DNA of 64,000 nt from Adineta vaga (taxonomy: Eukaryota > Animalia > Rotifera): positions 3,720,001-3,784,000 of the forward strand of contig CP075494.1 of the NCBI GenBank assembly GCA_021613535.1, given 5' to 3'. Of the stretch, positions 10,977 through 25,773 are shown one piece after another. Position 1 is the stretch's first letter. Every line of letters starts with the position of its first letter. A model generated the notes under the pieces. The model saw nothing but the letters and a program-made list of their open reading frames with translations. It made no database searches and was not told where the DNA came from. Made by a program: the position numbers and the translations under genes.

Positions 10977-13900
10977 ATGATGATTGGGAATGATCAATTC
11001 TGGATTGAAATTCTTCGTGATTATAATGTCGATCAAATGCTTTCATTACCTTATGATCGAAAACACATTTCTGTGAAGAGTCGTTCTAATCAAGTATGGT
11101 CAACTACATTCAATTTCGATTTAAAATTATTACAAATATTTCGACAGTGTACAACAAAACTAAAAACAACACTTGAAAACTTAATTTTTACGATCTATTA
11201 CATTTTTCTATTTAAAATCACAAATGATGATACAGACTTCTGGATTGGACGAAATTTTACCGATAAATATGATCATAGAATTCCATTTTATCTACGTGTT
11301 GATCCTCATTTGACGTTTATTGAACTTCTCAATCGCGTAACTAAAATGTCAACACGCACCAAACAACATGCACATGTTCCACTACTGATCAAATCAACTT
11401 TGTTTCCTATAGTTTTTAATTTCCACACTGTCAATTGTGATACCATAGAACCAAGCATATTTGATCTTTGTTTAACAGCTATTTACAGCGAAGAATCGAA
11501 TAATTTGCAATGCCAGATCAATGGATCATCTGATATATTTGATCATATCACATTACAAAAATTATCACAACGATTTCATCTTCTCTGTCAACAATTATTC
11601 ATTTCTTCTTTTGATCTTCATACACAACCCATCTATCAACTATCTATCATCTTACCCGATGAACAACGACTGCTCCAACAGATCCATAATATAGATACAA
11701 CCATATCAAACGATACATCGATCACAATTCCTCAACTGTTTAGTCAACAAGCTATGAAATATCCTCACAAGATCGCTGTTACATTAGATCAAGCATCGCT
11801 CACCTATTCTGAATTATTCCATCGAGCGAAACAATTATCTTTCACTCTTATTGATAGTTACAATGTTCAATCAGGTGATATCATCTGTCAATGTATTGAG
11901 CGAAGTATCGAAATGATCATTGGCATTTTGGCAATCATGATGTCAGGTGGAATCTATGTTCCATTGAATCCATCTGATTCATCTCAACGATTAGATTCAC
12001 TCATTCAACAAATCAAACCAAAATTAATACTGACACATCATCGATCAGCTTCTTCGTCTCTTTCACACAAACCTGGCATTTCCTCAGTTAATATTAATGA
12101 GATTATCAATCGTAACAACGAATGCGAAGAACTGCCTCCTGTCTCAATAACAGGAGAATCCATCTCAAATATAATTTTCACATCAGGATCAACTGGTGTT
12201 CCAAAAGGTGTTCAGATTCGTCATCGAAATTTCGTTTCTTATATGAAAACACAATGCTTTGATGATAGAGATACTATTCTTCAATTGGCAAGTTGTTCAT
12301 TCGATGTTCATTTAGATGAGATTCTTTGTTCCCTTTGTCTTGGTGGAAATCTTGTTTTACTTCGAGAAAATGGTCATCTTGATTTTGATTATATAACAAA
12401 GGTCATAGTTGATCAACATGTCACATTTATAGCACCAGTTCCCTCATGGATTGATGCATTATGTCAATATCTTCGAGCAAATACAGAGGCAAATGAAAGA
12501 ATGAGATCGATTCGATGGTGGTTCATTGGTGGTGAACAATTACTAAGCTCAACAATTCAACAACTGTTACCATTTGTTGATTCAGAATGTCATCTATTGA
12601 ATTCATATGGACCTGCTGAAATAACTGAAGCAGCAACATGTTATGAAATATGTCGTGATGATCTTAATGAAATGATAACGATCCCAATCGGTCAACCATT
12701 GAAAGGTTATCATATCTATTTAGTGGATGAATATCGACAAGAAGTGATACCAAATCAACAAGGTGAAATTATGATTGGAGGTGTTGGTGTGTTTGGTGGA
12801 TATTATCAGCGAGAAGATTTAACAGAAGAAGTACTAGTTGAGATGAATGGAGAAATGTTATAAGACCGGTGATTATTCGAATCGATGCGAAAAGTGGTGA
12901 TTTAATGTTTGTTGGAAGAAAAGATTTTCAAGTGAAACTTCGAGGACAACGCATTGAACTTGGTCATATCGAACATACTATAATAAAGTTTTCAACATCC
13001 ATATCGAACTGTATCGTGATAAAATATGTTTATCATGAACAGGAGCATCTTGTTGCTTACGTTGAAACACCATCAAATACGATCAAAGAGGAAGATTTAC
13101 ACGAGAAATGTTTATCAAATTTATCATCATATATGATTCCATCACTGTTTATTATTTTAGAGAAGTTTCCACTTTCATCGAATGGTAAAATCGATCGTAA
13201 GTCTTTGCCTTCACCTGACTTTAATTCATTGAGTAAAACGATAAATGAAGATATTGAATCAATGACTCCGATGGAAGTACGTGTACACCGATTATGGTGT
13301 GAAGTTTTGGATATGAAACAAATTTCTACGAAAAGACCTTTCTTCTCTCTTCATGGTACATCGTTATTATTTATGAAACTTTACAGTTTATATCAAATAG
13401 AATTTGGTATTGCTCCTCATATTGTAACCTGTTTACAACAAGCAACTATCAGTGAACATGCTCAACTTTTGACATTAGCTATTAATTCAAGTACCGGTTT
13501 ACATTATCAATCCTGGACTTGTTTGCACGTTGATCATGGTAAAATAAATGAATATTGTATATTGATTGATATGCTATAACTCTGTCATTTTAGCGAAAGT
13601 TTCATTTGCACAATCACGAATATTTCTGGATGAACAAATACGATTTCAGTCCTGGAATGAAGAGATGATTGCAATTTATAATCTTCCTCTTCTATGTCGT
13701 TTGTCGAAATCTTCTCTCTCAATCGAAGATCTTCGACAAACTCTTCGACAAATCACTGCAAAACATGCTATTCTACGTACATGCGTACGGCTAGATCCTA
13801 AAACTGGACATTTGTCACAATATATTCAACCCAATGATATCCAAGATTGGTTTAGTTTTGAAATAAGTATCATCGATGACAATAATGAATTGAAAACAAT

Positions 13901-16900
13901 TTTTAATCATGAAGTAATCAATCGAAAGCTTTTTGATATTGCTTTTGGTCGAGTTTTTCGATGTCATATTGTGCGTCAACGTTCATCCGTTGTCAATGCT
14001 ACCGACTTATTGTCGACAGATGATTGGATTATTTTTAATTTTCATCATATCGCCTTTGATGGAGAATCAGAACGAATCTTTCTTGACGATTTTCAACAAT
14101 TGTACAATCACAAACATCAAAAACAAGATAACGATAAACTACTGCAATATATTGATTGTAAGTAATAACTATAATCTATCTTATAGACAGCATATCTTTA
14201 GTCAGAAAATGGATTTGAATTTGTAAATTCTCGAGTAAAATTAGTTAAAACTATATAACGTGAAGATCTATTGTTTTATAGATTCCATTCATGAGCAACA
14301 TATTGATATGACAGCAGCTAAAATGTATTGGCGTCGAATTTTTAAAGATTATGAATTTAAAAAAACAACGATCTTGCCAGTCAATCGAAATTTTTCTTCA
14401 AACAGTATTTCCACTGGTGAAGGACTAAGTATTGAGATATATCTGACTGATCATATCGTTGAACGACTTATTACATATGCTTCAAGTGCCAATACTACTC
14501 TTTATCAAGTCTGTCTGACAATCTATTATGTCTTTCTATACAAACTATCTGGTGGTCGACGTGATATTCTAATTGGTATTGTACAGGCGAATCGGTATCG
14601 TCCAGAACTTCGACATATTATTGGCATGTTTGTGAATACATTACCGTTACTTATTCACATTGATCCATACGATACATTCGAACAAGTACTTTCTAAAGTA
14701 AAAACGATGATCTTCGAATCCCAACCTCATTCTAATTTACCATATCAGTCTATTATTGAACAATTACCTACGAAACGACTTAATCAATGTAATATAATTC
14801 AAACGATGTTTACTTTGGATGAATATCAAACAACAAAATCAACGTCTCAATTGAATCGTACATCTATTATTGAGCCTTATTCTATACATTATTTAGATGA
14901 GAATCTTGCTCAGATTGGAATTCCAACAAATGCACCTGCTATGTTTGATATAGAATTGTCTATGGAATATCTGACCAAGACATATTCCTTACGAACAAAT
15001 CTGTCTGTTTCAAACGAGCTTTGCGATTCATCAACACTGATCAAAATGGCTCGACAATTTCAGTTAGTTGTTGAACAATTTTCTCCGTCGACATCAATTT
15101 GTGATTTATCAATAATATTACCCGAAGAAGTAATACAACATGAACCAAAAACGATAACTAATTCCTTGACAGGTAATTTCAATCAGGTATCATTTATTTA
15201 TCAAATTACAGATGGATTTCTTTCTCTTGATCGTCTTCGACATGCTGTTCAGCTTGTTACTCTCAAACATAATTTAGTTGAAGTAGATACAGTTGATGTC
15301 TTATGTAATCCTTTACATCCTAATAGTTCCAATGGATATCAACAGAAAAATAACAATACAAATCTTCTTGAAAAGAGTGATACTATAGTTTTCAAATTTC
15401 ATCAGAGTGTATTGGATATTTTACCAATGAAAGTATTTTATCAAGAACTTTCTAAAGCATATGAATATGAAACAGCATTGATTAATAGCAATACAGCTGG
15501 TTATCATTTTGGGATGAGATTATGTTTGATTATCAATGGAAACGTTTATTCGATTTGGCAAGTGAAAAACATATTGGTGATACACTTACTGTCAGCTCTA
15601 CGTTTAATAGTGACCTAACAAACGCAATTCTGACTTATGTTTCAACAACAAATAGCTCTTCAATGGACTTATTCCTCGCAATTTATTATATATTTCTGTT
15701 TAAACTTGTCTTCAATCAAACCGATTTATGTGTTGGAATGCCTATCGATAATTTACATAAACTTGATCTGTAAGTTTATTTCTCATCTCATCTATCCATA
15801 AACGATATCATTCTATTATATAGCCTACCACTTCGGCTTCAACTTTATCCATCCGAAAACTTTGAATGTTGTCTGCAACGAGTAACTAAACTTTGTCAGA
15901 AGAGTTTATACTATGCTCACCATATTCATCGAGACGTCAAATTCTCATCATCAACTTATCTCGACATAGTTTTCAATTTTAAGAACAATTCTGACGAGAA
16001 TGAAACTATAAACAAAATTCGATTTCCTACTGCACAATTACAACAAATTCGATATGTTTCTGACACCAACCAATTGTATCATCATAGTGACCCTATACCA
16101 TCGAACTTTGATCTCTGTCTAACAGCAATCCATGATAAAACAATGAATACTTTTCAATATCAATTCGAGGGATCATCTGATATATTTGATCATACCACAT
16201 TACAAAAATTATCACAACGATTTCATCTTCTCTGTCAACAATTATTCATTTCTTCTTTTGATCTTCATGCACAACCCATCTATCAACTATCTATCATCTT
16301 ACCCGATGAACAACGACTGCTCCAACAGATCCATAATATAGATACAACCATATCAAACGATACATCGATCACAATTCCTCAACTGTTTAGTCAACAAGCT
16401 ATGAAATATCCTCACAAGATCGCTGTTACATTAGATCAAGCATCGCTCACCTATTCTGAATTATTCCATCGAGTGAAACAATTATCTTTCACTCTTATTG
16501 ATAGTTACAATGTTCAATCAGGTGATATCATCTGTCAATGTATTGAGCGAAGTATCGAAATGATCATTGGCATTTTGGCAATCATGATGTCAGGTGGAAT
16601 CTATGTTCCATTGAATCCATCTGATTCATCTCAACGATTAGATTCACTCATTCAACAAATCAAACCAAAATTGATACTGACACATCATCGATCATCTTCT
16701 TCATCTCTTTCAAACAAATCTGACATTTCCTCAGTTAGCATTGATGAGATTATCAATCGTAACAACGAATGCGAAGAATTACCTTCTGTCTCAATAACAG
16801 GAGAATCCATCTCAAATATAATTTTCACATCAGGATCAACTGGTATCCCAAAAGGTGTTCAGATTCGTCATCGAAATTTTATTTCTTTTATTAAAACACA

Positions 16901-19900
16901 TTCTTACGATGATAGAGATACTATTCTTCAATTGGCAAGTTGTTCGTTTGATGTTCATTTAGATGAGATTCTTTGTTCATTATGTCTTGGTGGAAATCTT
17001 GTTTTACTTCGAGAAAATGGTCATCTTGATCTTGATTATCTGACAAAGGTCGTGGCTGATCATCATGTCACATTCATAACACCTGTTCCATCAATGATTG
17101 ATGCATTATGTCAATATCTTCGAGCAAATACACAGGCAAATGAAAGAATGAGATCGATTCGATGGTGGTTCATTGGTGGTGAACAATTATTTAGCCCAAC
17201 AGTACAACAATTGCTACCATTTATTGGTCCAGAATGCCATCTATTGAATTCATATGGACCAGCTGAAGTAACAGAGGCATCAACAATCTATGAAATATGT
17301 CGTGATGATCTTAATGAAATGATAACGATCCCAATCGGTCAACCATTGAAAGGTTATCATATCTATTTAGTGGATGAATATCGACAGGAAGTGATACCAA
17401 ATCAACAAGGTGAAATTGTGATCGGAGGTGTTGGCGTGTTTGGTGGATATTATCAGCGAGAAGATTTAACAGAAGAAGTATTGGTTGAGATGAATGGAGA
17501 GACATGTTATAAGACCGGAGATTATGGTCGAATCGATGCGAAAAGTGGTGAATTAATGTTTGTTGGAAGAAAAGATTTTCAAGTGAAACTTCGTGGACAA
17601 CGTATTGAATTATCAATGATAGAATCGGTGATTCTTCAATCATCATCGGAAATCTTGAATTGTATTGTGATTAAAGAAGATTCCTCAAATGACAGTTATT
17701 TATGTGCTTACGTGAAAACAAGAGAAAATGCAGATACAAAGCGCATTGGCGATGAATTAATGAGAATGTGTCATAATCAGTTACCTTCGTATATGATTCC
17801 TTCGAAATGGATGTGCATTACTGAGTTTCCATTGAATTCAAATGGTAAAGTTGATCGACAAAAACTATCAAATCTTTCACAAATTGTAAATTTACCATCT
17901 GTATATCAGCCAATAGTTGCACCATTATCGTGTTTAGAAAAAAAATTAGAAGATATTTTTGTACGTGCTTTTACTTTGAAGACATCACCAGATATATTAA
18001 AATCATTTGGACAATTAGGTGGAACATCGTTGGGTGCAATGCATGCATTGATCTTAATTCGACAAGAAATATATGAACAAATAGATATTAGTCTTCTCTT
18101 TGCTAATCCTTCAATACGACAATTAGCTTCAGTATTAGAACCTCTTTTAGCGAATGTAAAATCGATTGAAGTAGAAAACGAAGATGAGAAAAACTTTTCT
18201 ATTCGACCTAATTCATCATGGCTCATTGAAACACTTGGAATTATTCTACTCGCATGGCAATGGTTATGGCCATTCTATTTCACAAGTCAATCAAATATTT
18301 ATATGTTTCGCTTATTGTTCATTCCATTAATACATTTATTCCAATATCTATTATTTGTTAAACTTCTTGATGCATCATCTTTACATGGTAGTGATAGTTT
18401 ATATTCCTGGCGTTATTATCGTTTATGGTTTTTACGACGTCAATGGTCTTTAAATACATATTGGTTAGGATATCTGTTTGGTACACGATTTTATAATAGT
18501 TATCTTCGTTTCTGTGGCGCTCGTATTAGTAAAACAGCGTGTATTTATACAAGTCAGATTGATGCACCTTGGTTGATTGAAATAGGAGATTGTAGTTATA
18601 TTGGTGAAGAAGTTGTTCTTTCGTCGATGAGTTATCATGATTGCATTTATGAATTACATCAAATTCGTATCGGATCTCATTGTTCAATCGAAACAAGAAG
18701 CGTTTTACATGACAGAGTTGATATGCATGATGGAATATTTATAGCACCATTAACATCTGTTACGGGTCAAATTCTTGGAAATGATGGTGGTGATATTCAC
18801 CTTTCAAGTGAAACTGCTATTCTCAAGCATTCGATATTTCAATTATTGATGATTCTATTAATGATTTCTATACATGCATTGATTTTCGAAATAAGTTGGT
18901 ATGCAATATCTTGTATATCTATTTGTTGGTTTATTTGGTCAATCGTTGGTGCCATTATGAGTTTATTCTTTCTTCGATTTGTGGTTGGTCATGTGGAAGA
19001 AAAGTTTTCTCATCCATTAAGCTCCTGGTCATTTCTTCGTCGGTTTTGGTTACGTCATTTAGTTCTTCATTCATTTCATCCATGTTTATCGACTAGTTTT
19101 GATGGATTCAATTCGTTTACTCCATTCATTCTTCGTTGGTTAGGTGCAACAATTGAAAATAATCATATTGAAATCGCAGATTTCGTTCCACTTCTTTCCA
19201 TTCCATCCAATCTATTAACAATCAAATCGGATGTAACAACAACATCAGAGATTTGTTTTGTTCCATATGATACAACAATCGATGGTCTATGTATTGTTAC
19301 TGGTCCAATTGAAATAAATCGTCGAGTATTTCTTGGAAATAATTGTCTTCTACAATCAGGTGTTTCGATCCCTGAAGATGTTCTGATTGGTTCTTTAACA
19401 CGAATTGATTCAACAACAATGATTCTTCCAGGTGATATCCTTCTTGGTGTTCCTGCTCAATCGATGCCATTTATTTTGTCGGATGTTGATGAAACACGAA
19501 AGATTTCTAATGATTTTCCGCGAATAGTAATTGAATGTATTCATTTTATTTTACTTGATCTATGTCTTTCATTTACTGTAATGAACACGACTAGTTTTAA
19601 TCAATTTTTATTAATGGTACTAATCTGTTGGTTGATTTATTCATTTCTTCTTTATATTATCTATATGTATTACATGAATAATAACACTTCGGAATCCAAT
19701 TGGAAAATAACATTAGCAATGATATTCTATTCTCAATATACGAAATACATAGGTCGTTTTCTCGGTAGTACACAATGGCTTATCTTTATTCTTCGTCAAT
19801 TTGGTGCACAGATTGGTAATGATGTGATTATTGATGAGATGAATTCCTTATATGATGTTCATCTAATTACTATTGATGATCATGCACGCTTATCATCGAC

Positions 19901-21008
19901 ATGTCAGATACAGGTAAAGATTATTTCTTTTATTTACATTTGATCTAACTTTCTTCTTGAAATATAGTGTCATACATTTGAACATCGTCAATTAAAACTT
20001 CGTCCAGTTAAAATTGGTTCCCATTGTATTTTAAAAGATATGTCATTTGTTTTACCAGGTGTCGAATTTCTTGGTTATAATTATTTACATCCTTGTTCAC
20101 TTGCTTTACCTCATGATCAATTTAAATTACATACAGATTGGTCTGGATCACCAACAAAACGTTTGATTGTTCATTATGGAATTCAACCACCAAGATTCAT
20201 TCTTGCTAACCGACAATCATCCATAGATAACTATGTTGTTGTTGTTGCACGAACTGATGATGATATACTTATTCTTTATTTTGGAGAGAACGGATGGACA
20301 AGTTGGCAATCCGGTCTGAATTTACGACAACCCTGTCGACCAAGTTATATTTATATAAGATTATTTTTTACATCATTCTTATGCAATTCAAAACCGAAAC
20401 GTATTCTTATCGTTGGTCTTGGTGGTGGAATATGGCCTATGCTTATTCGACATTATTTTCCGACAGTTATTATTGATGTGGTTGAAATTGATCAAACAGT
20501 AATTGATTTAGCAAACGAGTTCTTTGGAATTGAAGAAGAACAAACAAAGAATAATTACTTGAATTTGATTACAGATGATGGATATCATTATGTTAAGAAA
20601 ACAGCTCATCGATATGATATGATTTTTATTGACGCATTTTTAGAAGATACAATTCCTGCTCAGATTAATAGTCAACAATTTGTTCTCAATTTACATCGAA
20701 TTTTAAATAATAATGGTTGTTTAATTACAAATGTCAATGTTCCATCAACTATTGACTTTGATCGAATTGTTCAAAGACTTACATCCGTATTTGAATCAAA
20801 CATATTATTAGCTCATACAAATACGATTGAAAATGCACGTGTGATCATTTCAGGAAATCAATCGTCTTTAACATCAATATCTTCACGAACAGAAACCATT
20901 CAACAAGCCGAACGATTCGAAATAGAAACACATTTAGAGTTTAGTTTTTCACATTTAATTTCTCTTGCATATCATGGTTTAATCAATAAGAAAATAATAG
21001 AAACTTGA
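10977..21008 (+). CDS. Multi-exon NRPS: partial C - A1 - T1 - C - degenerate C - A2 - T2 - Pls-type membrane terminal domain - SAM-binding (spermidine synthase-like) domain; frameshifts near 12853-12878 and 15500
   Basis: A motifs FTSGSTG.PKG, NSYGPAE, YKTGD, QVKLRGQRIEL and NGK.DR. T motifs LHGTSL and LGGTSL. C motif HHIAFDG. Introns 13539-13593, 14158-14281, 15770-15823 and 19914-19967 each restore the frame. SAM motif ILIVGLGGG...VVEID...DMIFIDAF. Confidence 0.9.
11523..12960 (+). repeat. Internal duplication of the NRPS A-domain region (second copy about 16170-17610)
   Basis: Long near-identical DNA at an offset of about 4647 nt. Confidence 0.9.
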
Positions 21009-21751
21009 AATAAAGTAAAACTCGTAAACTTCTATTCAGATCTACATGTATTTATATCATCATAACATCGATCGCGTATGACTATAGAGAACGAACATAA
21101 ACATCAGTTTGACTCTACTAATATTAATATCTTAACATTTGAAAATAATTGAAGTTTCTGATAGGATATGGAAGGTTGAATCTCTTTCTTTCATTATCTG
21201 ATGAAACAAGTAAGGATATGTAAGTCTATGTTTTACTCTCCAAAAACATATATTTTTGAACATTGCTCATCATCGGCAACTCATAAAGAAAATTAACTTC
21301 TCAAGGTTAAATTCTTATAAGTGATTCAATCAGACGAAATATCATTGGATGCGAGTATGAGTAGAACAGGCTAGTTTCATCTACACTCACGTTCTGTTTT
21401 AATGTGTAAGATGGACAGATTTGTAAACAATCGTCATACAGGGAGAATGGAGGAAAAACATGCAAAATGGTTATTTTTCTTACTTTTGTCTTTCATATAT
21501 ATATACCTAACCACGTTTTCTTTTCCTGTGATGATGAAAACGACCTTGTAGTACGAAACGTGAATGAATAATACAAAAGATGTTTCTTTCAAAAATTGCG
21601 ATTGATTGTAGTTACATATTCATTGAGCTCAAAGTATGCTACTTTTCTGGAGTTATTGTAGTAATTGAAACTCCATATGTTTTTATTTATTGCTTTTTCT
21701 TTATCAATCATAAAATGAATTATTCTATTGAATATAAATTACATTGTAGAA

Positions 21752-23531
21752 ATGAACGGAACACGTGTATCTGGTATACTATTACATATCACAAGTCTAC
21801 CGAGTCCATATGGTATTGGTGATGTTGGCCCAGAAGCATATAAGTTTGTAGATTTTTTGCATGAAACTAAACAAGATATATGGCAGATATTACCTTTAAC
21901 ACCTACTGAACAATGTTCACCATATTCTAGTGTATCAGCATTTGCAGGTAATCAATTATTAATTAGTCCTGATAAATTATATGATATGAAATTATTGACA
22001 AAAGAAGATTTAATTATACCATCTAAATTCGAATTCAATGATCAATATGTAAAATTTAAACAAGTGACAGAATATAAATATGAAATTTTGAAAAAAGCAT
22101 TTGCAAATTTTAAACAACAGGAAAAACATGCTGATAATTTATTAAAAGAATTTCGTCAATCGGAACATTATTGGCTTGATGACTATTCATTATATATGAC
22201 AATTAAAGAACAACAAAATAAGAAATCATGGTCAGAATGGAAACATGAATTAAAATATCGTCAAAAGGAAATGTTAGAAGAAATAAATGAAACACAACAG
22301 AATTTAATTGAATATTATATTTTTATTCAATATATATTTCATCAACAATGGACACAATTAAAAACATACGCCAATAATTTGAATGTTAAATTTATTGGTG
22401 ATATGCCTATTTATGTTGACTATAATTCTGCTGATGTATGGGCAAATACACAAATATTTCAATTAGATAATGAAACATTACTTCCAACAGTCGTTTCAGG
22501 TAATTAATTAGCAAAGTTTCATTAAGATTATATCATACTTTATTTCTAGGATTTCCACCGGATGATTGTAGTACAGAGGGTCAAAATTGGAATATGCCAA
22601 TTTATAATTGGAACGATAATTCAAAAAAGTCCGACGTCTTTCGTTGGTGGATAAAACGATTAGAAAAAACATTGAAAATGGTTGATATTGTACGTATGGA
22701 TCATTTTCGTGGTCTGGAATCATATTGGTCAATTCCTGTCGATGAAAATCATATTCCTTTAAAACCAAAAGATGGTGAATGGGTAAAAGGCCCGTATGTA
22801 TAGTAGAAATCATAGAAATATTATTTGAATACTTTGTTGATTATGTTTAGAGGAACTGAATTTTTCAATACGATTTTCGATACATTAGGAAAAGATTTAC
22901 CTCTTATCGTTGAAGATCTTGGTAATATAACAAAGGAAATCACTGAATTACGTAATCAGTTCAATCTGACTGGTATACGAATATTACAATTTGCATTTAC
23001 TTTTCAACCAGATAATTTACATTTACCACATAATTATATCAAAACTGCGTTGCGTATACAGGCACACATGATACTCTAACAGTAGTTGGATGGTGGACTC
23101 ACCATGCATCGGATGATGAAAAGACGAATTTTTTGGACTATATCAACATACCGATAATGCATGATGACGATGATCATGAGAAAATAAATAATCAAGATAT
23201 TGTGATTTCATATTTGGATAAACATATTAATTGGTATTTTATACAAATGATATTAGGAACAGTTGCTAATACTGCTGTTATTTATTTTCAAGATATTCTT
23301 GGTTTAGATAATGATTCAAGAATGAATGATCCATCTCTGGGTAAGTTTGAAAAAAATCATGTTCAAATCATTATTTTCTCATATTTTCTTTTAGCATCAA
23401 ATCCAGATTATGATGGTCCACAGAATTGGACATGGCGATTTACTTGGCCGATGTTGGAAGATAATTTTCGAAAGAAACTAAGGTTCTTTACAAATATATA
23501 CAATCGAGATGGTTTAAACAAAAAATTATAG
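21752..23531 (+). CDS. malQ: 4-alpha-glucanotransferase (GH77 amylomaltase), 4 coding exons, 1-nt frameshift at about 23041
   Basis: GILLHITSLPSPYGIGD, WQILPL, GDMPIYV, RMDHFRG, VEDLG and YTGTHD. Introns 22500-22549, 22794-22850 and 23341-23394. Confidence 0.92.
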
Positions 23532-23653
23532 ACTGTTTTCGCTTATAATCCAGCAAATTTTATTTACTCTCTTTCTTCTGTATTTCAATACATTATCATT
23601 TTTTTGAATTGACCACACGTTTTTGAGTGTGAGCAAAGGCAAACTCTAGGAGC

Positions 23654-24734
23654 TTACAAATAAACTGGCTGTCCACTTCGCACAGATTCATCACAAGCAA
23701 AAGCGATGTGTAAGCTGTTAACGGCATCTTGCAGGTGATCTGTCAAATTGAGATCATCTTGAATAGCCTTCAGAAAATACTGTTGTTCCCGTATACATAA
23801 TTCTTGATGATCTGGCTCGTCCTGCATATCAATCCAAGTATCATCTTGCGCGAATTGATTGGCATCATTCAGTGAAGCATGATGTACTCGTAAAGATTCA
23901 GCATTAGTATGCATATCCACCTTATCAGATTTACCATCGGCACCAGCGGTCCTGGCGACAATCGATACACAACCTTTTGGTCCAATTACGTCTTTCACAA
24001 AGAAAGCGGTTTGGCTCATCATCGGACCCCAACCAGCTTCATACCAGCCTATAGAACCATCTGCGAATCGAATCTGCAATTGACCATAGTTATAGTTATT
24101 CTCCGGTATCTCATCAGTTAACCGTGCTCCAATGGCATTGACCTGAATAGGCTTTGAACGAGTCATCTGACACATTATGTCTATGTAATGTACTCCACAA
24201 TCAACAATTGGACTAAGACTTTTCATTAAATTCTTATGAACAATCCACATATTGTCATGGCTTTGTTGATTCAAATTCATTCGCATTACTTGGTTTACCT
24301 AATCCTTGAGCTAATTCTACAAATTTTGTCCAGGAAGGATGATGGCGTAAGATATAGCCAACAACTACTTTTTTCCTAGCCATTTCTGCCGCTTTTACTA
24401 TTCGTTTGGCACCTTCCACTGTGTCAGCAAGAGGTTTCTCAATAAATACATGGCAACCATGTTCAAGTGCCATGACAGCAAATGCTTCATGAGTATCAGG
24501 ATAAGTTGAAATACAAACGGCATCTGGTTTTGTGCTGATCAACGCAATCTTAATATCATCGAATAGAGCATAACTACCACCTAATTGTTCATTAAGGACG
24601 TCTTTACTTTTTCCAGTGGAGACCAGGCCACAAATTTCGAATCCAGACAACAGCGAATAAGCTTTGGCATGAGCTGCACCCATGTTTCCACATCCAACAA
24701 CAAGAATACGCACTGTATTAGATGTATTTGACAT
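23654..24734 (-). CDS. Gfo/Idh/MocA NAD-dependent oxidoreductase, resembling D-apiose dehydrogenase; frameshift at about 24289
   Basis: VVGCGNMG Rossmann motif, EKP, MRMNLNQQS and DCGVHYID; intronless. The ApsD-like call is from my recollection of the family. Confidence 0.85.
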
Positions 24735-25002
24735 AATTAAATCTATTCTTCCACAGGACACAATTTAGGGTTTAAATTTGTTATGTAAATTGAAATGTAT
24801 GAAAAAAAGAGTTTATCAGCTACCTGTAAAACTATGTGAAAGAAGAAAGAGAATACTAAATTTATCATAAGTATTGAAACATAGTCACTGTATTTGATAT
24901 ATTCAGATTAAACAAAAGATAAGAAAATTACTTTTCTTTCACATTTTGTTACATCTCTATGCAAAAGTACAGTAAAAATTAAACGATAATTTAAATTGTA
25001 AA

Positions 25003-25773
25003 ATGTACAGATTTCAATTGCTAACATTATTCCTCCTTCAACTCACTGCATTTTTCTTATATGCTCAAACTAAATCACTAAAAGGTGTCTGTTCCACCAG
25101 TCCATCTGATCATTGCAATGAAATAGATCGTCTCAATGCTTCTTGGTATTACAATTGGCTACCAATATCGAACTGTACTCCAAGTCCAACAGCTGCGTTT
25201 ATTCCAATGATTTGGAGCGATGCTTTTATGGATAAACTACCACTCGTTAACAGTTCTGGTGCACCTGTTCTGCTCACTTTCAACGAGCCAGATTTTGATT
25301 CACAGAGTAACATGACCGTAGAACTTGCTGTCTCTCTTTGGCCACTAATTGAACGAGAAATAGATCCTCAAATAAAGATTTCTTCTCCTGCACCTACTTC
25401 TTCTCCGGCAGGGCAACGATGGTTGTTACAATTCATGATAGAATGTGTACATTGTCGTATCGATATCATTGCTTTGCATTATTACAATACATGCGATGCC
25501 GATACTTTTTTTTCATTTCTCAATACTTGGACAATTTTTGGCCTACCTATTTGGCTTACTGAATTCGATTGTATGACAAAATCTGAAGAAGACAATGTGA
25601 AATTTGCACAATCAGTAATTCCTTTGATGGCAGAACGTGTGCCATTACTGCAACGCTATGCATGGTTTGCTACTCGTACTGATATAAAAGATAAATACTA
25701 TTATGGTTGTGCATTATTCAATGCAACAACATCGGAATTAACGAGACTCGGTCGTGTTTATCGAGCATTGTGA
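25003..25773 (+). CDS. Secreted GH128-like (Glyco_hydro_cc/Asl1) beta-1,3-glucanase
   Basis: Signal peptide; WYYNW, FIPMIW, FNEPD (acid/base), PIWLTEF (nucleophile) and RYAWF. Confidence 0.88.
   Translation: MYRFQLLTLFLLQLTAFFLYAQTKSLKGVCSTSPSDHCNEIDRLNASWYYNWLPISNCTPSPTAAFIPMIWSDAFMDKLPLVNSSGAPVLLTFNEPDFDSQSNMTVELAVSLWPLIEREIDPQIKISSPAPTSSPAGQRWLLQFMIECVHCRIDIIALHYYNTCDADTFFSFLNTWTIFGLPIWLTEFDCMTKSEEDNVKFAQSVIPLMAERVPLLQRYAWFATRTDIKDKYYYGCALFNATTSELTRLGRVYRAL

Follow-up and report, generated by a model that had tools for sequence, protein, structure and literature searches.

The locus described here raises the question of how an animal nonribosomal peptide synthetase (NRPS) finishes its product when the place of a thioesterase is taken by a membrane domain of the poly-lysine synthetase (Pls) type. 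It lies in a stretch of 64,000 nucleotides of the Adineta vaga genome (assembly GCA_021613535.1, contig CP075494.1, positions 3,720,001 to 3,784,000 of the forward strand), which is called the window below and whose coordinates are used wherever no other contig is named. NRPSs of bdelloids have been documented and are horizontally acquired (Nowell et al. 2024, PMC11258130; survey in PMC10531068), and the window gene belongs to the same genome and to the same class of intron-bearing C-A-T genes as those reported there. However, the fungus-induced cluster in focus of PMC11258130 is a PKS-NRPS hybrid, unlike the window gene. In word searches, neither main text referred to a transmembrane or poly-lysine terminus, nor did that of PMC10531068 refer to a methyltransferase. 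Supplementary Data 9 of PMC11258130 gives at least 17 NRPS_term_dom matches on this assembly, one of which has the coordinates of a locus also found here; the window locus is not among the matches listed. In the case of PosA, metazoan homologs were mentioned and Nematostella was named, but not rotifers (PMC10522769). No literature description was found of an NRPS followed by a Pls-type end and a methyltransferase. The reading favored here, with about equal weight for and against it, is that of a bdelloid-wide, membrane-anchored two-module NRPS giving short N-methylated cationic oligomers.

Organization of the NRPS gene

Domain and motif searches recovered, from 10977 onwards on the forward strand, a half condensation (C) domain, a first adenylation (A1) and carrier (T1) domain, a condensation domain (C1), a degenerate second one (C2), a second adenylation-carrier pair (A2, T2), the Pls-type end and a SAM domain. 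The N-terminal half C domain with its linker (10977-11735; PF00668 positions 196-270), which is also present in orthologs, comprises the C-terminal lobe only and lacks the catalytic motif. It is followed by A1 (11736-13210; code DVDAFGSEAK), whose frame is broken at 12853-12877 in this assembly, and by T1 (13280-13470) with an intact serine motif, HGTS. An intron of 55 nt with GT..AG borders is predicted at 13539-13593 from the sequence and from a break in the ortholog alignment. C1 (13594-15120) keeps an intact HHIAFDG motif and is split by another predicted intron at 14158-14281. C2 (15121-16373) reads HQSVLD at the catalytic position, where orthologs carry HP or HQ variants, and contains a predicted intron at 15770-15823 as well as a frame break near 15504. 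A2 (16374-17870; code DVDTFGSEAK) and T2 (17940-18140; serine of GGTS intact) complete the second module. C (HHxxxDG), A and T (Ser) domains thus occur in the order of a multimodular NRPS, with an intact catalytic motif in only one of the two C domains, C1.

The Pls/PosA-type terminal domain begins at 18180. The segment up to 19913 holds helical hairpins 1 to 3, beta-helix repeats 1 and 2 and the start of repeat 3; an intron of 54 nt (19914-19967, GT..AG) splits the conserved QxHxFExRxxK motif, and repeat 3 ends in 19968-20165. In the same exon and frame follows a SAM domain with a spermidine-synthase fold of the METTL13-C/NHMT type (20166-21008; GLGGG, VEID, DG and DAF motifs), closed by a stop codon at 21006-21008. 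The first-pass annotation had noticed that neither a thioesterase nor a reductase follows T2; this was borne out by the domain searches, which detected no terminal C release domain either. Its description of the gene as a hybrid of a C-A-T NRPS with a Pls-type terminus and an in-frame SAM domain is likewise supported; the arrangement is spliced, recurs in other bdelloids and is under purifying selection.

The Pls-type terminal domain

The TIGR02353 profile has three matching stretches within 18180-19913 (E 6.1e-30, 104.2 bits), and its positions 633-694 of 695 match where the last exon begins (E 8.5e-08, 31 bits). The two exons were searched apart, without a joined spliced protein, and scanned in this way neither reaches the curated cut-off of 423.1 bits. 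A TIGR02353 match had been anticipated for the spliced end, and what was obtained are significant hits on both exons with scores far below that cut-off. Structural comparison was carried out on the A. ricciae database protein. The model of its terminal domain (pLDDT 89.7) shows three helical hairpins with a beta-helix after each, as described for PosA (PMC10522769), and superimposes on models of Pls/PosA clusters with TM 0.88-0.91 over about 620 residues. In profile-profile alignment by hhalign, the match between the bdelloid profile and canonical Pls extends over 660 columns (probability 100, 18% identity). On both counts, chance and low complexity were rejected as sources of the HMM hit. The domain thus has the arrangement that characterizes Pls/PosA, in which three helix pairs are combined with three left-handed beta-helices, and the three membrane-flanked repeats proposed initially are indeed present in 18180-19913 and 19968-20165, with hydrophobic helices before each.

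The invariant repeat-3 motif of canonical Pls is also retained, as its Q, H, F, E, R and K residues are kept in the window and in almost all bdelloid copies. By analogy with beta-helix acyltransferases, the His of this motif may act as a catalytic base. Matches among solved structures were confined to single beta-helix acyltransferases, and no solved Pls terminal domain was found. A search of 185,579 genomes with exact short patterns, a procedure of low sensitivity, returned no bacterial relative of the window-type terminus.

The window gene thus resembles Pls/PosA in having an A-T unit followed by a single pseudo-threefold domain, in the absence of a thioesterase and in the acidic residue at position 3 of the A pocket. 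It differs from them in that a second module and C domains stand upstream (two A-T units in all), and in that the terminal domain, which is the last one in Pls/PosA, is followed in frame by a SAM domain of 280 aa. In addition, the terminus is about 20% identical to theirs and under the TIGR02353 cut-off, introns are present, and the A domains are similar to those found in ordinary multimodular NRPSs.

Splicing and the junction to the SAM domain

The intron at 19914-19967 is in phase 0 and contains an in-frame stop. It had been suggested that repeat 3 is completed only by its removal. In agreement with this, one contig of run X4 skips exactly 19914-19967, although it is a single contig of low depth (2.5) whose shorter side measures 60 letters, and the run, which was produced in 2018 by another study, is not on record as RNA. 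A second X4 contig (20066-20666) starts in the repeat end and reaches the SAM domain (X4 contig depths are 2.5-3.5). The orthologs of A. ricciae and R. socialis have an intron at the same place, ahead of the CHTFE-type motif, and in 10 A. vaga paralogs this motif is preceded by an AG acceptor.

Downstream of the intron, the frame 19968-21005 is open over 346 aa, covering the repeat end and then the domain detected by PF01564/PRK04457, and the junction between them aligns without gaps in all orthologs. That repeat 3 runs in frame into the SAM domain is hence confirmed by the open frame and by orthologs in three species. A separate SAM gene starting at the ATG at 20040 was rejected, as this ATG lies inside beta-helix repeat 3 and the orthologs are fused at the same residue.

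Orthologs, selection and state of the A. vaga copy

A survey of the architecture across bdelloids had been advised, and it yielded the same layout in A. ricciae, A. steineri and Rotaria socialis. The gene models CAF0762464 of A. steineri (2970 aa) and CAF4299032 of R. socialis (3212 aa) show the full layout, and the A. ricciae model CAF1536394 (2669 aa) is truncated at its 5' end and begins inside A1. In all three, C2 is devoid of the catalytic motif. The gene is under purifying selection: dN/dS against A. ricciae or R. socialis ranges from 0.08 to 0.31 per domain tested (0.16 for the SAM domain), and reaches 0.35 between A1 and A2. Bacterial contamination is rejected by the introns, the chromosome-scale contig and the presence of orthologs in rotifer assemblies. 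None of the six window ORFs occurs as an exact sequence in the protein collection.

Whether the A. vaga copy itself is intact is a separate matter. Alignments with orthologs place two frame breaks upstream, at 12857-12878 in A1 and at about 15504 in C2. The A1 break consists of two 2-nt gaps relative to A2 (12853-12877) that flank the YKTGD (A7) motif and represent either a real lesion or an assembly error; orthologs are continuous across this site. At 15504, DNA contigs of run X1 (2013) carry one more base at full depth, so this break is an assembly error or allele-specific. Real frameshifts had been regarded beforehand as damaging to the proposal; that at 15504 is contradicted by the DNA contigs, and the A1 gaps stand in this assembly.

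It could still be, though we think it rather doubtful, that the family is real but the A. vaga copy or haplotype is a recent pseudogene, or that only a truncated A2-T2-terminus-methyltransferase protein works, a reading about the condition of this locus that does not conflict with the others considered below. Apart from the two gaps in A1 and the frame change at 15504, it draws on the nine presumed RNA runs, which contain next to none of the locus, and on a decayed partial duplicate of 19863-21019 on another chromosome (C3:856064-857070, minus strand, annotated as UJR06701), which has 79% DNA identity, frameshifts and stops. It is opposed by the absence of the 15504 break from the X1 contigs, by a frame that is open from 15824 to the end except for the intron, by the low dN/dS, including that of A1 against A2, and by the existence of a spliced contig. 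Furthermore, no gapped contig of the A1 type was seen at the equivalent A2 site in reads over 15150-21100, although contigs drop variants.

A bdelloid family of Pls-type ends

The Pls end is a genome-wide bdelloid family that extends beyond the window locus. In the six-contig A. vaga genome of 100.8 Mb, TIGR02353 gives 34 matches at about 16 loci. Two of these are canonical Pls genes above the cut-off, at about 510 bits (C1:11882475-11884550 and C1:880858-882927), with no C domain detected near either in the 10 kb examined. Both have the canonical A-T-Pls layout, PosA-like pockets (FDMFLEE and FDLFLEE, with Glu at position 3) and relatives in A. ricciae and Didymodactylos, and among the genes found they are the strongest candidates for a genuine poly-diamino-acid synthetase in an animal. 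The window-type end recurs at 12 other A. vaga loci, most of them behind C-A-T modules. A sample of bacterial Pls-type loci, biased and mostly from Burkholderiales, contains neither a C domain nor a C-terminal fusion in any of 80, and in every one the protein ends 65-88 aa after the motif; this fits the earlier statement that Pls enzymes are normally single A-T-terminal modules.

In a quick tree of the ends, the window-type ones form one clade (support 100) on a long branch, within which the spermidine-synthase-like fusion makes up one subclade (support 100). A separate subclade contains A. steineri proteins fused to a Methyltransf_11/25 domain (P0020, P0036, P0043 and P0049). The same domain lies just downstream of a Pls-type end in A. 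vaga (C6:13706500-13716499, minus strand), to which it is possibly joined through an intron. This distribution suggests that a methyltransferase was fused at this position on two independent occasions, and such a recurrence supports methylation as a coupled step. The conserved methyltransferase fusion is what separates the window locus from its paralogs.

Other members of the family have further neighbors. At C1:13712500-13722499 (minus strand), a Pls-ended NRPS is followed about 110 bp on by a PKS ketosynthase ORF, and a cytochrome P450 gene (locus L040, 7828-9360) comes directly after another paralogous Pls-ended NRPS. A third, very divergent Pls-type gene at C5:2479476-2481679 has a split terminal domain and falls on a long branch outside both main groups.

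The SAM domain as a putative N-methyltransferase

The C-terminal domain had been described as spermidine-synthase/methyltransferase-like, and this can now be refined. The segment 20166-21005 matches PF01564 and PRK04457 (116.7 bits against a cut-off of 304), and its model (pLDDT 93) adopts a full spermidine-synthase fold with a Foldseek TM of about 0.7. Aminopropyltransferases need the acid of GxG(D/E)G for decarboxylated SAM (PMC10349129). This acid is absent from the window and from every ortholog, all of which have GLGGG as motif I, the same as METTL13-C. The residues used by METTL13-C, namely a post-I Glu, a DG motif and a post-II Asp (PMC6109062), are present, as expected for an N-methyltransferase of this fold. 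Because the acid is missing and the METTL13-C residues are kept, the fused SAM domain most likely acts as an N-methyltransferase and not as an aminopropyltransferase. The alternative, in which an aminopropyltransferase makes or extends a polyamine that becomes the acceptor or a side chain, appears very improbable: although the best family and fold matches are annotated spermidine synthases, and the domain has both an N-terminal beta-subdomain and the post-II Asp, the scores fall far under their cut-offs (116.7 against 304 and 53.8 against 249.55), motif I is of the METTL13-C type throughout, and in a sister clade a methyltransferase of the ordinary class I kind was fused independently at this site.

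The likeness to the METTL13 C-terminal domain, to Aspergillus NHMT and to bacterial proteins of the PRK04457 kind extends to all of these motifs, and Aspergillus NHMT is also membrane-tethered, like the window SAM domain. However, METTL13-C and NHMT methylate protein N-termini, whereas the window SAM domain is fused to an NRPS. An even number of predicted membrane helices precedes it, which would place it on the side of the membrane where the A and T domains lie. Its closest non-rotifer relatives are uncharacterized proteins with 28-38% identity, and three stand-alone spermidine-synthase-like proteins encoded elsewhere in the genome (L034, L035 and L036) are 26-38% identical to it.

Adenylation pockets and likely substrate

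The codes read from motif positions in A1 and A2 are acidic at positions 3 and 8. Diamino-acid binding mode 1 is recognized by an acidic residue at position 3 of the code, which is Glu in Pls/PosA (PMC12042044; PMC10522769), and in SulM acids at positions 8 and 9 mark diamino-acid binding (PMC12042044). Position 3 is Asp in the window and in most orthologs, and Glu in one A. steineri copy. The rest of the window code is unlike Pls codes, and many paralogs with the same terminus have no acidic residue at position 3. A diamino acid is a likely substrate for A1 and A2 to judge from these pockets, and their near-identity suggests the same or a similar diamino acid on both. The cationic product initially envisaged is in this sense plausible from the acids at positions 3 and 8, but position 3 is Asp and not the hallmark Glu.

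At the DNA level, A1 and A2 of the window are about 93% identical. Their modules (11460-12958 and 16107-17609) are near-identical within each species but not from one species to the next, a pattern suggestive of concerted evolution through gene conversion; the first exons of A1 and A2 are identical in R. socialis.

Proposed mechanism

In the mechanism favored here, A1 and A2 would load the same or a similar amino acid, probably a diamino acid according to the pockets, onto T1 and T2. C1, whose motif is intact, would join both residues into a dipeptide bound to T2, with the dead C2 serving as a spacer. The role of a thioesterase would be taken by the pseudo-trimeric beta-helix domain of the Pls type, which would couple the T2 thioester to an amine acceptor through an amide bond. 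By analogy with Pls/PosA chemistry, this acceptor would most likely be the previous product, which would lead to short cationic oligomers at the membrane. The fused SAM domain may then N-methylate an amine of the product as a capping or tailoring step. The TIGR02353 score (104 against 423) and the identity of about 20% to canonical Pls speak against this mechanism, together with the Asp at code position 3, the A1 gaps of the A. vaga copy and the single low-depth contig behind the splicing.

The Pls-type domain may instead be a single-turnover off-loading acyltransferase that transfers the dipeptide at the membrane to a small amine, polyamine, sugar or lipid, the methyltransferase tailoring the conjugate without any polymer, a proposal that we entertain as the less probable course. 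In line with it, 12 further NRPSs of A. vaga end in this domain, several of which have two modules or more and varied A pockets; the nearest solved folds of the domain are the beta-helix acyltransferases, and its clade sits on a long branch away from canonical Pls. Single off-loading also fits better than polymerization with the many paralogs lacking an acidic position 3. By contrast, all three repeats, the six helices and the repeat-3 motif have been retained, and the characterized members in the literature covered are all polymerases. Oligomer formation by the Pls domain appears more likely than a single transfer, but not by much. The product may plausibly have a defensive role.

A more far-reaching version, offered only tentatively, is that the Pls membrane polymerase has turned, in bdelloids, into a general-purpose end for multimodular NRPSs to which a methyltransferase was twice fused, and that this clade polymerizes pre-assembled dipeptides into N-methylated cationic polyamides. 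If true, it would imply an animal-made antimicrobial polymer and a new assembly logic, with NRPS module chemistry feeding a membrane polymerase. The importance of the family can be appreciated from the fact that Pls/PosA enzymes have been described as single-module homopolymerases, whereas bdelloids place the same domain behind C-A-T modules and ahead of methyltransferases. Being large and old, this animal family offers natural variants with which to decide between two roles for the domain, that of a polymerase and that of a general release domain that forms amides. For some of the roughly 40 NRPS/PKS clusters of bdelloids linked to antifungal defense, the proposal also specifies a class of product that can be tested, and it hints at a way of making poly-amino acids that are methylated or have a defined sequence.

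Genomic neighborhood

No conserved cluster was found around the gene, as its neighbors differ in A. ricciae and R. socialis. Downstream of it, the window contains a gene for a GH77 4-alpha-glucanotransferase (21728 onward), an oxidoreductase-like gene over two frames on the minus strand (23654-24761) and a glycosyl hydrolase with a signal-peptide-like N-terminus (25003-25773), and these neighbors (21728-25773) look horizontally acquired or carbohydrate-related.
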